The notes under the pieces were generated by a model, which saw only the letters and a list, made by a program, of their open reading frames with translations, did no database searches and had not been told where the DNA came from. A program made the translations under genes and the position numbers. From the sequence record MK568540.2: DNA of 64,000 nucleotides; one strand, written 5' to 3'. How positions within the stretch are numbered: position 1 is the stretch's first letter; each line of letters opens with the position of its first letter. Shown here piece after piece: positions 8,661 to 44,705 of this stretch.

Positions 8661-8699
8661 ATAATAATAAAAGTGGCTGCATAGCGCAACCACTTTTTT
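8661..8699 (-). promoter_or_regulatory. fused terminator/early promoter
   Basis: TTGCGC(8684-89)-17-TATTAT(8661-66) within aagtggtgc/gcaccactt-type hairpin. Confidence 0.75.
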
Positions 8700-38017: not shown

Positions 38018-38470
38018 TTATACCTCTCGTTGATTTTCATATTCGCTCGGTTGAGTCAAGATAAACTCTAGCCATTGGCGACGATATTCAGTAAATAGCT
38101 CTAAATCTACTTTGCCATTGTCTTGAATAGCAATATCGTGAATAAACGTACCGCGGTAATAATCGACGTTTAGACATGCTTTGAGCTTAGACAGTGCTGC
38201 TTCAGACAAGTCGATTTTGCCTTGTAATGCATTGTCATAAACTCGCTTAACAAAAGGCGCTGCAATCTTAGATAACGTAGTTTTCACGTCAACGTAAGAC
38301 GAATATTTTTCAAATGGATTTTTGGTAGAACGTACAAGAAACGCAATTTCATTACACGTATAACCATACATATCAGTTAAAATATCACCATCTTTTAGTA
38401 GTTCAGCAGCAGCTACTTTGATTTCACCCAGATGTTTCATTACACATTCTCCACGATATGTTTCAGCCAT
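38018..38470 (-). CDS. YTC/R..WL family paralog 1
   Basis: A.ELL..YTC...FIH...RRQWLEFI; start probably MKHLGE (38440). Confidence 0.7.
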   Translation of the reverse strand: MAETYRGECVMKHLGEIKVAAAELLKDGDILTDMYGYTCNEIAFLVRSTKNPFEKYSSYVDVKTTLSKIAAPFVKRVYDNALQGKIDLSEAALSKLKACLNVDYYRGTFIHDIAIQDNGKVDLELFTEYRRQWLEFILTQPSEYENQREV

Positions 38471-38817
38471 GCTTTACGAGCCGCTACGAAACATTCAAAA
38501 TCAATTTCTTTACCGCGCATAGAAATCACGTGAATGAACGCAGATGAGAAGAAAGAATCAGCCATGATCCACTTGAGTTCAGAGCGTGATGCCTCTTCTA
38601 GCTCAAAGCCAAGTGTTTCGACGGGATTGCGCAATACTGCATATAAGAACGACTTAGCGAGTTCACGAATAACTGCTTTAACTTCGCTATAAGTGTAATC
38701 ACTGCTATCGTCGATAAGATCAACAATGCGATTGCACGTATAGCTATTGATGTTTGAAGTGATGTCATCTTCAAGTAATTCAGTCGCGGCTTGGCGAATG
38801 CGTTCATGTAGATTCAT
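38440..38817 (-). CDS. YTC/R..WL family paralog 2
   Basis: ATELL..YTC...AFIH...RKAWLKHI. Confidence 0.7.
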   Translation of the reverse strand: MNLHERIRQAATELLEDDITSNINSYTCNRIVDLIDDSSDYTYSEVKAVIRELAKSFLYAVLRNPVETLGFELEEASRSELKWIMADSFFSSAFIHVISMRGKEIDFECFVAARKAWLKHIVENV

Positions 38818-38818
38818 T

Positions 38819-39253
38819 TTATTTTCCCTCGTACTGTGACAAGAATTTCAACCATGCTTTACGTGCTGCTACGAAATGTTCTTTATTCAACGGCCCGTAT
38901 GCACGAGCAATCGCGTGTACAAATGCACCTGCTAGACCCCAATCAAAATCGTCTTGTAGTTCATCGATTGTATCTTCTGGTAGAATAAAACCAAGTACAC
39001 CGTAAGAGTCTGCAATGACAGTTTTAACAAACTCAAGACCTGCTTCTTCTACATGTTCATTACATGGTGCATAAAGTCTTGCTTTTTCTCTTTTCGACAA
39101 GTCATATCGAGCTTCAAACAAATCTGAAACACGATTAATGACAATACAACAGCTATACTCGTAAGAGTCTGCAAGTAAGGCATTGTCATTAGACATTTCA
39201 GTAGCCATTGCGCGAATTTCTTTGATGATTTCTGATTTCTCAATTGCTCTCAT
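38819..39253 (-). CDS. YTC/R..WL family paralog 3
   Basis: ATEM..YSC...AFVH...RKAWLKFL. Confidence 0.7.
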   Translation of the reverse strand: MRAIEKSEIIKEIRAMATEMSNDNALLADSYEYSCCIVINRVSDLFEARYDLSKREKARLYAPCNEHVEEAGLEFVKTVIADSYGVLGFILPEDTIDELQDDFDWGLAGAFVHAIARAYGPLNKEHFVAARKAWLKFLSQYEGK

Positions 39254-39829: not shown

Positions 39830-40237
39830 TTATAGTGAATTAATCAAGAATTTTAACCATGCTTTACGTACAAATACAAAATCAATATCATCGGCATCTT
39901 CAAATACACGCGATACGCTATGTACAAATGCACTAAGCTTGTTTTGAAAAATCTCGTTGAGATATTCAGCTTCAGTTGAAGTCAATTCACGACCAAATAC
40001 AGCTTCAGGGTTAGCTTGTAGATGGTCACAGAAAGCTTCGCCTTTATCTTTAATGATACGCATAGCTTTTTGTTGAGCAAGAACGCCAAGCTTGATTTCG
40101 ACGTGATCATCTAAAATATGACACGTGTAAGCGTCTTCATCGCTTAAAATCGCGGTATTTTGACGTAATTCCAGTGCTTTTTCGCTAATTACACGGCGAA
40201 TTTCAGTGTTATCAAGGAAATCTGGTAGAATTTTCAT
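39830..40237 (-). CDS. YTC/R..WL family paralog 4
   Basis: ALEL..YTC...AFVH...RKAWLKFL; start refined to MKILPD. Confidence 0.7.
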   Translation of the reverse strand: MKILPDFLDNTEIRRVISEKALELRQNTAILSDEDAYTCHILDDHVEIKLGVLAQQKAMRIIKDKGEAFCDHLQANPEAVFGRELTSTEAEYLNEIFQNKLSAFVHSVSRVFEDADDIDFVFVRKAWLKFLINSL

Positions 40238-40570: not shown

Positions 40571-40632
40571 TAGTCGTTGTCGTTTCGATAAAGCTATAAT
40601 ACAAAAAAGGGCTGCATAGTGCAACCCCTTTT
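40571..40632 (-). promoter_or_regulatory. fused terminator/early promoter cassette
   Basis: TTGCAC(40619-24)-17-TATTAT(40596-601); leader similar to 14968-14990. Confidence 0.8.
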
Positions 40633-40638
40633 ATTAAA

Positions 40639-41709
40639 TTATTTTCGCTTGCAACGAGCGTTCTTTGTCATATGAGCACAGCACTCATCAAGAAACCCCT
40701 TTCTATTAGCAGAAGAATAAGCCGCACTAGAGTTTTTCTGCCAATCACTTCTAGTCTTATATTTCAATGCATCTTCTTTAAGACGTTCAAGTGTCCAATA
40801 TCCATTAGGTTTTCTTTGTAATTCCATATGAGCACAGCACTCATCAATTATACCCTGATTATAAGCATTACTACAACCGCTAGAGTTTTCCCTCCATTCT
40901 CGGCGAGTCTTATATTTCAATGCATCTTCTTTAAGACGTTCAAGTGTCCAATATCCATTAGGTTTTTGATGCATTGTCATATGAGCATAACACTCGTCAA
41001 GTAATCCTTTCTTATGAGCAGCAGCGTAAGCACTGGGTGACATTTTCCGCCACTCAGAACTTGTCTTGTATTTCAACGCATCTTCTTTAAGACGTTCAGG
41101 TGTCCATTTTAATGTTGAACTCCCCAATGCACCAGCTTTAGAACGATTTAAAATAATCCATCCATTGTTTCTGTAGTACTCAATGTGTTCTTTCTCTGCA
41201 ATTTGCGCCAGTTCTTGATTCATATACTCAGTCAATTGCTCGAACTTGACGTTTTCAATGCCATGACGTTCGATTAGATCTATGACCTGAGTTGTTTTCT
41301 TTCGATGAGAACTAAAGCGTTGCTTAGTATCGTAAGTCAACCCAATGTAAATCTCATTACCTGCATAGATTCGATATATACAGCGAGAAAATGCGTTTTT
41401 AGTTGATGGCTTCATATGACCACAACACTCGTCAAGCAACCCTTTCTTATGAGCAGCATCATAAGCACTGCCTGACATTTTCTGCCAATCACTTCTAGTA
41501 TTGTACTTCAATGCATCTTCTTTAAGACGTTCAAGTGTCCAATACCCTCTAGGTTTTTGATGCATTGTCATATGACCACAACACTCATCAATTATACCCC
41601 TACTCTGAGCAGCAGAGTATCCAGATGACATTTTATTCCATTCTTGGCGAGTCTTGTATTTCAACGCATCTTCTTTAAGACGTTCAGATGTCCATTTAAT
41701 TCTAGTCAT
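40639..41709 (-). CDS. GIY-YIG endonuclease with five ~50-aa repeats
   Basis: CIYRIY..NEIYIG.T...R...H GIY-YIG core; repeats WT.ERLKEDALKY.TR..W...DECC.HM (2 N-terminal, 3 C-terminal); start refined to MTRIKW. Confidence 0.85.
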   Translation of the reverse strand: MTRIKWTSERLKEDALKYKTRQEWNKMSSGYSAAQSRGIIDECCGHMTMHQKPRGYWTLERLKEDALKYNTRSDWQKMSGSAYDAAHKKGLLDECCGHMKPSTKNAFSRCIYRIYAGNEIYIGLTYDTKQRFSSHRKKTTQVIDLIERHGIENVKFEQLTEYMNQELAQIAEKEHIEYYRNNGWIILNRSKAGALGSSTLKWTPERLKEDALKYKTSSEWRKMSPSAYAAAHKKGLLDECYAHMTMHQKPNGYWTLERLKEDALKYKTRREWRENSSGCSNAYNQGIIDECCAHMELQRKPNGYWTLERLKEDALKYKTRSDWQKNSSAAYSSANRKGFLDECCAHMTKNARCKRK

Positions 41710-41719
41710 AATATTCTCC

Positions 41720-41770
41720 AATTCAAAAACTGTAGAATATAAAAAAGGGCTGCATAGCGCAACCCTTTTC
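41720..41770 (-). promoter_or_regulatory. fused terminator/promoter duplicated upstream of each GIY-YIG gene
   Basis: TTGCGC(41757-62)-17-TATTCT(41734-39). Confidence 0.75.
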
Positions 41771-41775
41771 TTCAT

Positions 41776-42996
41776 TTATTTTTTGACTCGTATTGGCATA
41801 TGACCACAACATTCATCAAGTATACCTTGTATTCGAGCAGCTTGATACGCACTAGATTTCTTCTGCCATTCTCGGCGAGTCTTGTACTTCAATGCATCTT
41901 CTTTTAGACGTTCGGTTGTCCAATAACCACTCGGCTTTCTTGTAGTAGTCATATGAGAACAACATTCATCAATTATACCACGTTTTCGAGCAGTTTGATA
42001 CGCACCACTAGAGTTCTTGTACCATTCATTTCGAGTTTTGTATTTCAATGCATCTTCTTTTAGACGTTCAAGTGTCCAATAACCACTCGGCTTCTGTCTT
42101 GTAGCGGGCATATGACCACAACATTCATCAATTATACCACGTTTTCGAGCAGCATCATAACCACTAGAGTTCTTCTGCCATTCATTTCGAGTTTTGTATT
42201 TCAATGCATCTTCTTTTAGACGTTCGGTTGTCCAATGCAACATATCACCACCAAGACTACCAGCCTTAGAACGATTCAAAATAACCCAATCGTTATTCGC
42301 GTAGTACTCAATATGTTCCGCCTCTGCAATCTGAGCAAGTTCCGGCTCCATGTAGTCAGTCAATCGCTCGAAAATCACATTCTCAATCCCAACTCGCTCT
42401 ATTAAATCTACAATCTGCGGCGTTCCTTTACGATGGTCGTGGAATCGTCTATCAGTATCATACGTCAACCCGATGTAAATCTCATTACCAGAATATATAC
42501 GATAGATACAACGCTTTGATAAATTCTTGACATTTGTCTTCATATGAGAACAACATTCATCAATTATACCACGTTGTTGAGCGGCACTATAAGCGCCACT
42601 AGAGTTCTTGGCCCATTCTCTGCGAGTCTTGTACTTCAATGCATCTTCTTTAAGACGTTCAAGTGTCCAATAACCATTCGCCTTCCTTGTAGTAGTCATA
42701 TGAGAACAACATTCATCGATCAACCCATGATAATGAGCGGCACTATAAGCGCCACTAGAGTTCTTGTGCCATTCATTTCTGGTCTGGTATTTCAATGCAT
42801 CTTCTTTTAGACGTTCAAGTGTCCAATAACCCCTCGGCTTTACCAGTGCTGTCATATGACGGCAGCACTCATCAAGCAATCCTCTCTTATGAGCAGCATC
42901 ATAACCACTACGTGATTTCTTCTGCCATTCACCACGAGTCTTGTACTTTAAAGCGTCTTCTTTAAGTAACCCAAGCGTCCATTTAATTCTAGCCAT
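41776..42996 (-). CDS. GIY-YIG endonuclease with six ~50-aa repeats
   Basis: same core and repeats (3 N-terminal, 3 C-terminal); start refined to MARIKW. Confidence 0.85.
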   Translation of the reverse strand: MARIKWTLGLLKEDALKYKTRGEWQKKSRSGYDAAHKRGLLDECCRHMTALVKPRGYWTLERLKEDALKYQTRNEWHKNSSGAYSAAHYHGLIDECCSHMTTTRKANGYWTLERLKEDALKYKTRREWAKNSSGAYSAAQQRGIIDECCSHMKTNVKNLSKRCIYRIYSGNEIYIGLTYDTDRRFHDHRKGTPQIVDLIERVGIENVIFERLTDYMEPELAQIAEAEHIEYYANNDWVILNRSKAGSLGGDMLHWTTERLKEDALKYKTRNEWQKNSSGYDAARKRGIIDECCGHMPATRQKPSGYWTLERLKEDALKYKTRNEWYKNSSGAYQTARKRGIIDECCSHMTTTRKPSGYWTTERLKEDALKYKTRREWQKKSSAYQAARIQGILDECCGHMPIRVKK

Positions 42997-43006
42997 AATA
43001 TTCTCT

Positions 43007-43058
43007 AATTCAAAAACTGTAGAATACAAAAAAGGGCTGCATAGCGCAACCCCTTTCT
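43007..43058 (-). promoter_or_regulatory. fused terminator/promoter (copy of 41720..41770)
   Basis: TTGCGC(43044-49)-17-TATTCT(43021-26). Confidence 0.75.
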
Positions 43059-43065
43059 TTAACTT

Positions 43066-43677
43066 TTACGAATGAAGCTCTTCATCGTACTGACTAGCAA
43101 GATAACGACCATCAATACGATAATCACCACAATCAGATACTAAACCATCTACACTAGAATCACCAACTGTAAACACAACTAGTTTACCATACGTCTCAAC
43201 GGCAATTTGTGTCGGACGAGATACAACAACTGTCGCGTCATGTGCATATGCCAATACACTATCGCTTTCGGCATAAATGTCTAGTATCTCACCAACCACT
43301 AGCTCATGCTCTTCATCGACAAAATCAGTTTCTTTATACGTGTAAACAAGACGACCGCTCTTCCACTTACAAGGATACCAATCCCAATCTTTCGCAGATA
43401 GCTTCAGGCGTGCATCTACAGAGACTTTTTGACCATTAATCTTAGTCTCTCGCTGAACATTACCATTCACGCGCTCTTCTTCTACTGAATAAAACGAACC
43501 GTCATCACATACAAGCATATATGTCGGCTGCTCTACACCACGAATACCATCACCCGAATCAATGCAATTCAAATAACCAGACCATGTGTTGTAGTACGTC
43601 TCAACTCGCGATAAACTACCACTCGGCATAACCGCTTGCTTCTCTACTACCTTTTTGTTTCTTTCTACTCGTTTCAT
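43066..43677 (-). CDS. hypothetical protein
   Basis: 203 aa, AGGGG SD. Confidence 0.65.
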   Translation of the reverse strand: MKRVERNKKVVEKQAVMPSGSLSRVETYYNTWSGYLNCIDSGDGIRGVEQPTYMLVCDDGSFYSVEEERVNGNVQRETKINGQKVSVDARLKLSAKDWDWYPCKWKSGRLVYTYKETDFVDEEHELVVGEILDIYAESDSVLAYAHDATVVVSRPTQIAVETYGKLVVFTVGDSSVDGLVSDCGDYRIDGRYLASQYDEELHS

Positions 43678-43748: not shown

Positions 43749-44078
43749 TCATATCTTAACCTTATTAATGTTCTCTATAATGTATTTCAACCAGCTCTTG
43801 CGCTCATATGCACGCAACTTACGACGCTCACAAGGCGGATGATACGCACAGATAAAAGAATAACAATCTTCTAACTCATTAGGCATATCACTCTGGCGTA
43901 CATACATACGCTGCAAATGCTTTAATTTAAGCTTAATCAAGCTAACCATTTCTGAATTCACACCACGCTGCAACTCTAAACAGGTGTACACGCGATGCAA
44001 CTCACCACAATTCAATAACTCTAGAGCACGAGCACGTACATGGCGATTCACTCTGTAATTCTTAAACAACATTACCAA
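43749..44078 (-). CDS. YTC/R..WL family paralog 5
   Basis: RALELL..YTC...SFI...RKSWLKYI. Confidence 0.65.
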   Translation of the reverse strand: MVMLFKNYRVNRHVRARALELLNCGELHRVYTCLELQRGVNSEMVSLIKLKLKHLQRMYVRQSDMPNELEDCYSFICAYHPPCERRKLRAYERKSWLKYIIENINKVKI

Positions 44079-44218: not shown

Positions 44219-44388
44219 AATTACCTCCGTAGGCAGTTCAAATCTCTTTGCATTCTCTCACATAATGCCGCTGGCTGTCAAGCAAAAAGATGCGAAGCGG
44301 ATTAGATTTTCACAAATGATGTAAGGTTTTAGACTGCCGCGTACCACACAGGAGCCGATGAGTCTTTCACCATTTTTTCACTAAAAAG

Positions 44389-44497
44389 TTATCCACATTA
44401 TCCACAGACTTATGCACAGCTAAATCATGTTTTTATACACAGATTTCAGACACTTATGCACAATCTCATACACATATTATCCACAGATTTATACACA
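44389..44497 (+). repeat. array of DnaA boxes (candidate origin or DnaA-titration site)
   Basis: TTATCCACA 44389, 44398, 44477; TTATGCACA 44410, 44454; TTATACACA 44433, 44489; TCATACACA 44466; all same strand, in a ~370 bp non-coding gap. Confidence 0.85.
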
Positions 44498-44588
44498 TGT
44501 GCATTTAAACGAGGCATGGTGCGATATATTAAAAACAATACTATCTGTACCATGCTCTGAGACGCTGTGAGAGCGATTCTAAGCGTTT

Positions 44589-44705
44589 TTAGTCATCGTT
44601 TGATATATCGCTCAGGCACCAACCGGCTATAGCTGCTAGAGCACATAGAACAAGCATGAGGTAGCCGATAGGTATATCGTTTAGTAGATTGATTAGTGTT
44701 TGCAT
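44589..44705 (-). CDS. 38-aa membrane microprotein (not in ORF track)
   Basis: MQTLINLLNDIPIGYLMLVLCALAAIAGW..; TAATG coupling. Confidence 0.45.
   Translation of the reverse strand: MQTLINLLNDIPIGYLMLVLCALAAIAGWCLSDISNDD

Follow-up and report, generated by a model that had tools for sequence, protein, structure and literature searches.

Two adjacent genes of Vibrio phage Va3, here called A and B, are reasonably likely to encode free-standing, Seg-like endonucleases of the homing type whose DNA-binding array is new and recombines; DNA binding, target specificity and homing are the properties that we infer for them. The genes lie in a stretch of 64,000 nucleotides (the window) that was 100% identical to sequence record MK568540.2, a window position being the record position minus 183567. 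Va3 is a Schizotequatrovirus and belongs to the KVP40-like T4-type phages. In the mechanism that we propose, catalysis would take place in a central GIY-YIG core of the I-TevI type, and the flanking modules of about 43 residues, strung on KPxGY linkers like beads on a string, would form the nucleic-acid-binding part, with the exposed faces of helices 2 and 3 as the putative contact surface. Recombination at the near-identical DNA encoding helix 1 would add, delete, convert or move repeats, so that the array would differ between alleles. Each gene, with copies of one terminator hairpin at its borders, would travel as a cassette, such cassettes would be gained and lost at one intergenic slot, and the enzymes might cleave genomes without the gene and home. 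The two genes are as follows.

40639-41709, minus strand: gene A (Va3_342, 356 amino acids), an annotated coding sequence with two repeats, a GIY-YIG core and three repeats.
41776-42996, minus strand: gene B (Va3_343, 406 amino acids), an annotated coding sequence with three repeats, a GIY-YIG core and three repeats.

Both reading frames were intact, and the longer open reading frames (ORFs) over A and B differed from the annotated coding sequences only by an extra 5′ leader. The encoded proteins were 69% identical overall and strongly basic (isoelectric point 9.4), and their phage family, phrog_20046, is listed with unknown function. Among the PADLOC defence models, A gave only a weak 22-bit match to the candidate family PDC-M06A, and B and the bacterial relatives gave none.

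The nuclease core was located in both proteins.

42235-42522, minus strand: GIY-YIG core of B (residues 159-254), supported by a catalytic set shared with 64 cores of the family, by the I-TevI profile alignment and by Foldseek.
41107-41394, minus strand: GIY-YIG core of A, supported by Pfam GIY-YIG (PF01541; 23.3 bits, over the cut-off of 22.6) and by the comparison of the 64 cores.

The core of B scored 15.3 bits against the same Pfam model, under its cut-off. A profile of the 64 cores matched the solved structures of I-TevI, UvrC, T4 endonuclease II and SLX1, and it aligned residue by residue to I-TevI, the E75 position included. The catalytic set (Y165, Y174, G176, R184, H188, E225 and N241 in B numbering) was invariant or nearly so in the 64 family cores and complete in A as well as in B. 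Similarly, Foldseek matched the AlphaFold model of B to the I-TevI catalytic domain (1mk0 and 1ln0) with a probability of 1.00, a template modelling score of 0.65-0.73 on the target and a root-mean-square deviation of 2.7-3.1 Å over 92-97 residues. The nearest neighbours from outside the family among predicted viral structures were annotated as Seg-like or intron-associated endonucleases. A preliminary description of this DNA had proposed a central GIY-YIG core in each gene, and these results confirm it and assign both cores, with all catalytic residues kept, to the I-TevI/Seg type. Neither NUMOD nor helix-turn-helix modules were detected in A or B using Pfam.

Around the cores, a regular expression and a profile identified 11 copies of a unit of 42-43 residues that starts with W, ends with HM and recurs every 51-52 amino acids (153-156 nt).

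42541-42981, minus strand: N-terminal repeats of B, with unit cores B1 (42853-42981), B2 (42697-42825) and B3 (42541-42669); found by the profile and Tandem Repeats Finder.
41797-42234, minus strand: C-terminal repeats of B, with unit cores B4 (42109-42234), B5 (41950-42078) and B6 (41797-41922); found by the profile and Tandem Repeats Finder.
41413-41694, minus strand: N-terminal repeats of A, with unit cores A1 (41569-41694) and A2 (41413-41541); found by the profile.
40669-41106, minus strand: C-terminal repeats of A, with unit cores A3 (40978-41106), A4 (40825-40950) and A5 (40669-40797); found by the profile and Tandem Repeats Finder.

When the unit profile was compared with the six-frame translation of the window, every one of the 11 copies was recovered with E values of 1e-27 to 1e-31, and no twelfth copy was present elsewhere in the 64 kb. 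At the DNA level, Tandem Repeats Finder reported arrays with a period of 153-156 nt and 75-86% matches. The tandem-repeat observation is correct and far beyond chance, and both the profile E values and the coordinates of the coding sequences agree with the arrangement described earlier, that is, two adjacent genes with 2+3 and 3+3 repeats round a central core.

The AlphaFold model of B had a mean predicted local distance difference test (pLDDT) of 78 and showed each unit as four helices of about 8, 7, 9 and 4 residues. The pLDDT was 80-90 within the units and 58-65 in the KPxGY linkers. The predicted template modelling score (pTM) of the whole protein was only 0.30, and the units would therefore behave as separate domains on a string. 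A single-unit model made from 86 repeats gave the same four-helix fold, with a pLDDT of 85.7. Structure prediction of one repeat and of the full protein, which had been suggested as a check and was run here on the protein alone, thus returned four-helix units and flexible linkers, and the repeat is predicted to be an independently folded four-helix mini-domain.

Conservation was analysed over 916 repeats from about 110 distant relatives. W1, A10, H42 (98%) and M43 were essentially fixed, and T2, C6, Y13, F/W19, A26, Y27, A30, G34, W35 and C40 were strongly conserved. Cysteine occupied position 6 in 81%, position 39 in 38% and position 40 in 77% of the family, and relatives carried Leu, Ile or Val in place of C6 and C39. 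Two pairs of columns covaried, 19/39 (W with C, F with I) and 6/35 (C6 with W/I35), as packing of a hydrophobic core predicts. The zinc site (CC.H) considered in the preliminary description is not supported because C6, C39 and C40 can each be replaced by aliphatic or hydroxyl residues; with H42 as the only fixed candidate ligand and cysteines that covary with hydrophobic partners, such a site is unlikely. Matches driven by the repeats in Pfam, NCBIfam and PADLOC searches of the proteins and of single repeats (Insulin, SusF_SusE and fragments of HTH_48) were rejected as spurious. A likeness to Myb/SANT repeats, based on the spaced aromatic residues, found no match in Pfam or among PDB sequences, and it stays unsupported because Foldseek with the single-repeat model gave no credible match. 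Precomputed matches pointed to PF27474 and, faintly, to PF26058 (DUF8019), and we found no paper mentioning DUF8019 and no description of this repeat in the literature.

In order to determine how widespread the repeat is, its profile was compared with 1.84 billion cluster representatives (clusters at 50% identity). This profile search, another check named at the outset, returned 9,454 proteins at E values up to 0.001, of which 3,593 had E values of 1e-30 or lower, with up to 17 units each. A word-based search gave at least 1,224 matches among 8,000 candidates. The repeat is therefore not peculiar to Va3, which holds one member of a family of thousands. Family members were found in phages, in jumbo phages and in at least six bacterial phyla, the bacterial ones including Vibrio, Cellvibrionaceae, Polynucleobacter, Comamonadaceae, Aquamicrobium, Pedobacter, Prevotella, Phocaeicola, Flavobacteriaceae, Bacteriovoracaceae and Synechococcus. 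Bacterial and viral-contig loci were located with a degenerate DNA pattern. Viral loci numbered 59, including a 640 kb phage contig with at least four separate loci, and two bacterial copies were solitary genes. The source names of the relatives read only GIY-YIG nuclease family protein or hypothetical protein. An uncultured Prevotella sp. metagenome-assembled genome (locus L029) carried two adjacent family genes with nine and seven repeats and one core each; tandem pairs are not unique to the vibriophage.

The architectures comprised arrays of 2-17 units joined to partner domains, with 0-8 units N-terminal to the GIY-YIG core and 0-9 after it, as well as repeat-only proteins of 2-13 units. 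The GIY-YIG domain was fused to the array in N-terminal, central or C-terminal position. The array was also fused to superfamily 2 (SF2) helicases, to an HNH nuclease (25.3 bits, over the cut-off) and possibly to MTES_1575/DUF559-like (Vsr-like) nuclease domains, for which the matches were weak. All the partner domains that could be identified act on nucleic acids. Layouts of the 0+GIY+n type occurred among the relatives, as in Rhizobium phage RHph_TM3_3_9 (locus L038, 43194-47166), where two 0+GIY+3 genes stand immediately on either side of a DNA primase gene. In such 0+GIY+3 relatives, the array sits where Seg enzymes carry their DNA-binding domain, which is one basis for the DNA-binding assignment. 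Together with this layout, the association with partners that act on nucleic acids and the isoelectric point of 9.4 lead us to infer that the array binds nucleic acid, and the repeat family is probably a modular DNA-binding array. In two viral contigs (L061, 6251-7258, and L099, 5073-6473), arrays were followed by a C-terminal domain of 100-180 residues with a GIY-like 'KIG/KFG' motif and no Pfam match. A guess that the C-terminal domain of some viral relatives was T5orf172 was not confirmed by Pfam.

The arrays differed strongly between alleles of the slot that A and B occupy. Alleles with cores 85-93% identical carried arrays of 2+3, 1+4 and 1+2 units, and other alleles carried 2+2, 3+2, 3+3 and 4+2. 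Traces of exchange were seen within several of them. In R11Z_A, the first unit had been converted towards the second; PVA23_5 contained a two-unit duplication (C1 matching C3 and C2 matching C4); in VH7D, units N2 and C1 were 95% identical across the core; and in XZ1, N2-N3 matched C1-C2. The helix-1 coding part contained identical DNA runs of 37-60 nt between units, including from A to B and across the core. Since this part is near-identical at the DNA level, phage recombination can rework the arrays, and these runs could drive the conversion and duplication of repeats. The repeats had been proposed to be modular and open to reshuffling, and the slot alleles of the sister phages, ranging from 1+2 to 4+2 with conversion, duplication and sharing across the core, bear this out; the variation in copy number to be looked for among relatives was likewise present.

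The divergence among the 11 Va3 units was concentrated at particular positions. Twenty of the 43 columns were invariant, and most of the variation fell in columns 17, 20, 22, 24-25, 28-29, 31-33, 35-36 and 41. Placed on the model, these lay on the exposed sides of helices 2 and 3 and in the turn that connects the two, with A26, Y27 and A30 on the buried face. Pairwise counts among the Va3 units gave ratios of nonsynonymous to synonymous substitution rates (dN/dS) of 0.10 in columns 1-16, 0.46 in columns 17-33 and 0.14 in columns 34-43. The synonymous rate (dS) was 0.67-0.88 in all three segments, and the units are therefore old copies rather than recent ones. From the pattern of dN/dS by segment it follows that the framework is under strong purifying selection and that one surface is under much weaker constraint. 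The only stretch with a ratio above 1 comprised four codons (omega 1.18), too few sites to count, and in orthologue pairs the codon differences (5 vs 5 and 3 vs 4) were too few to judge selection. The near-invariant framework with a variable stretch, as first described, was thus upheld by both the invariant columns and the dN/dS contrast; the single variable helix was not, the variation falling on two helices and the turn that joins them.

The genomic context was examined in the sister phages, where the slot lay, in the loci inspected, between homologues of Va3_341 and Va3_344. The numbers of family genes at the slot were none in ValKK3, KVP40 and nt-1, one in phi-Grn1, VH7D, XZ1, VH1_2019 and phi-ST2, and two in Va3, R11Z and PVA23; R10Z had one family protein, known from protein and DNA matches only. 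B was 99-100% conserved in R11Z and PVA23. The features that bound the genes are listed here.

43034-43052, minus strand: terminator-like hairpin 5′ of B (-18 kcal/mol, z -3.8), the first of three copies bounding the gene cassettes.
41747-41765, minus strand: the same terminator-like hairpin between B and A.
40609-40627, minus strand: the same terminator-like hairpin 3′ of A, the only one of the three copies that occurs in the empty ValKK3 site.
43066-43677, minus strand: Va3_344 (phrog_13976, of unknown function), part of a divergent block linked to B and a candidate target gene.

The hairpin copies folded at -17 to -19 kcal/mol, and three were present in the Va3 locus versus one in ValKK3. 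A fourth copy with two mismatches was found far from the locus (8674-8692, minus strand), which points to a terminator element in shared use, at which recombination could take place. A was the orthologue of the single phi-Grn1 gene (98% DNA identity), and the core of B was closest to that of VH1_2019 (84%). A recent tandem duplication was rejected as the origin of the pair: A and B are 69% identical and have separate closest relatives, and are thus two alleles brought together. Per 100 bp, the block containing Va3_344 was 71-92% identical to ValKK3, VH7D and phi-Grn1, versus 96-100% beyond position 44030, and the phages that carried B also carried the divergent 344 allele. The joint divergence of B and 344 resembles a co-converted tract, with 344 as the candidate target, and is the one indirect trace of homing that the locus offered. 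In ValKK3 (locus L002, 3643-3747, minus strand) and nt-1 (locus L007, 3048-3143), the slot held a zinc-ribbon-like ORF of 34 residues with a CxxC...CxxC motif, which was absent from KVP40 and from every nuclease-carrying phage examined. A simple model in which the empty site holds the target gene was rejected, as ValKK3 and nt-1 carry this ORF and KVP40 carries nothing. The locus marks a recombination hot spot in KVP40-like vibriophages.

Several results weigh against the assignment of A and B to homing endonucleases with a DNA-binding array. The unit had no model in the Pfam library used, and no Pfam DNA-binding family was consistently matched by the repeats; no relative of the repeat was found in the PDB by sequence or profile, and Foldseek with the single-repeat model gave nothing better than E 7.5 in the PDB, its sensitivity being low for a model of 48 residues. 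Among solved DNA-binding folds, the repeat model thus had no structural homologue that would link it to DNA. At the segment level positive selection was not found, with dN/dS reaching 0.46 and staying below 1, so that selection for new specificity is not demonstrated. Many family members stand alone in bacterial chromosomes, where homing is less obvious. In addition, ordinary cassette shuffling could account for the presence and absence of the genes without homing, because the slot is generally plastic, as the CxxC ORF and the empty KVP40 site illustrate.

Among the alternatives, the one that best withstands the data retains DNA as the ligand and dispenses with a modular code. The repeats would clamp DNA generically or by its structure (branched or modified DNA, for example), the residues that vary would be no more than those under least constraint on the surface, and the proteins would serve host-DNA breakdown, recombination or phage competition instead of site-specific homing. 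We consider this unlikely on balance. In favour of a clamp, the positions that vary in Va3 were also the most variable across the family (rho 0.62), and dN/dS was 0.46 and thus below 1; the helicase fusions fit general DNA tethering equally well, and the slot holds unrelated cargo in other phages. However, helix 1 is equally variable family-wide and yet frozen in the Va3 lineage despite a dS of about 0.7, and the constraint is therefore patterned and not uniform. Moreover, the arrays differ sharply between alleles with nearly the same core (85-93% identity), and the Rhizobium phage copies flank a primase gene in the manner of classic homing genes.

A second alternative, in which the repeats bind no DNA and would instead mediate protein contacts or oligomerisation, such as docking to the replisome or to a host factor, or else bind RNA, is very unlikely in our assessment. 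It would agree with a fold that has no match among known DNA-binding domains and with the existence of repeat-only proteins, which made up 60 of the 241 repeat-bearing proteins examined and contained no other domain. Against it stand the strongly basic character of the proteins, the fact that every identified partner domain acts on nucleic acids, and a metagenomic contig of 349,939 bp with phage-like genes (locus L012, 157-3730), in which a repeat-only gene of 691 residues from a jumbo phage overlaps the end of an SF2 helicase gene and looks like a split form of the helicase-repeat fusion.

The least likely alternative, decaying or domesticated selfish elements that encode an inactive nuclease or a regulator and became a tandem pair as a by-product of hairpin recombination, can draw on the Pfam score of B (15.3 vs 22.6 bits), on the dedicated promoter that was not evident 5′ of either gene (promoter-like matches only, overlapping the start codons) and on the precedent of I-TevI, which doubles as a repressor (discussed in PMC10448857), but it is hardly compatible with two intact frames, all catalytic residues in both proteins, a framework under purifying selection (dN/dS 0.10-0.14 at dS 0.7-0.9) and the near-complete conservation of B in R11Z and PVA23.

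The Seg-like reading that we prefer also has a more ambitious form, in which the unit is a new modular reader of DNA that arose in nature: a short sub-site would be recognised by each repeat through the exposed sides of helices 2 and 3, the two-sided arrays would set a long composite target and recombination in the near-identical helix-1 coding part would reprogram it. We put this forward tentatively and regard it as rather doubtful. If it were true, the scaffold would be one already attached in nature to GIY-YIG nucleases, HNH nucleases, helicases and possibly Vsr-like nucleases. In any case, the repeat ranks among the larger protein modules to which no function has been assigned. Should it bind DNA, the targeting of a whole class of GIY-YIG nucleases would be explained, phage homing endonucleases would offer a second example, independent of the first, of recombining repeat arrays, and the repeat might provide a new modular DNA-binding scaffold.

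Two further observations concern the surroundings of the slot. Paralogues of phrog_4354, a family of unknown function, lay round it (38018-38440, 38440-38817, 38819-39253 and 39830-40237, all on the minus strand, and weakly 43749-44051), and four to five of these small genes shared a C-terminal ARKAWLKF-like motif. Within an ORF-free gap (44219-44704), seven DnaA-box-like TTATNCACA sites were clustered in 109 bp (44389-44497, plus strand). Three of the seven were perfect TTATCCACA, and the whole window contained 12 versus 4.07 expected by chance. This cluster is the origin-like island of the preliminary description, about 1.4 kb from B.

Comparison with known systems places A and B near several of them. 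In the T4 Seg enzymes, the core is N-terminal and a DNA-binding region of another type makes up the C-terminal part, and the T4 seg and mob genes are intergenic between conserved genes and have their cut sites hundreds to thousands of base pairs away (PMC2988022). Like T4-type SegA-G and I-TevI, A and B have an I-TevI-type core with equal catalytic residues; like SegA-G, they are intergenic between conserved genes, vary in presence among sister phages and are linked to a divergent flanking gene. In contrast to SegA-G and I-TevI, their core is central and not N-terminal, no NUMOD or helix-turn-helix accompanies it, and the non-catalytic part consists of five to six helical units on both sides without a model in the Pfam library used.

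Tandem near-identical units with few variable surface positions, and a framework whose DNA identity favours recombination, are shared with the repeats of transcription activator-like effectors (TALEs) and with zinc-finger arrays. The Va3 period of 51-52 residues nevertheless differs from their 33-35 or about 28. Unlike TALE repeats, which use a two-residue code, the Va3 unit has about 10-13 variable positions, and its units are predicted to be separate domains on flexible linkers and to form no solenoid (pTM 0.30). Unlike zinc-finger arrays, it lacks a conserved set of zinc ligands.

A parallel in principle is provided by the T5orf172 homing endonucleases, in which CapR/DUF723/DUF4397 zinc-finger domains are repeated and recombine with one another inside the gene (Barth, Dunham and Seed 2023, PMC10448857). 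As in those enzymes, A and B combine a nuclease of the GIY-YIG superfamily with independently folded repeats arranged as beads on a string, and they too occur in Vibrio phages; repeat recombination alters the copy number, and domains are swapped between alleles (PMC10448857). The Va3 repeat differs in being all-helical and 43 residues long, without a CxxC...CxC motif, and A and B differ in having a canonical GIY-YIG core with repeats on both sides. CapR, DUF723, DUF4397 and T5orf172 gave no match at E values up to 1 with the whole proteins or up to 10 with 86 single repeats. A survey of the GIY-YIG superfamily from 2006 goes no further than naming unorthodox homing endonucleases with 'other domains'. 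Altogether, recombining repeat arrays in phage homing endonucleases have already been published for a different repeat domain, and the repeat described here is new.

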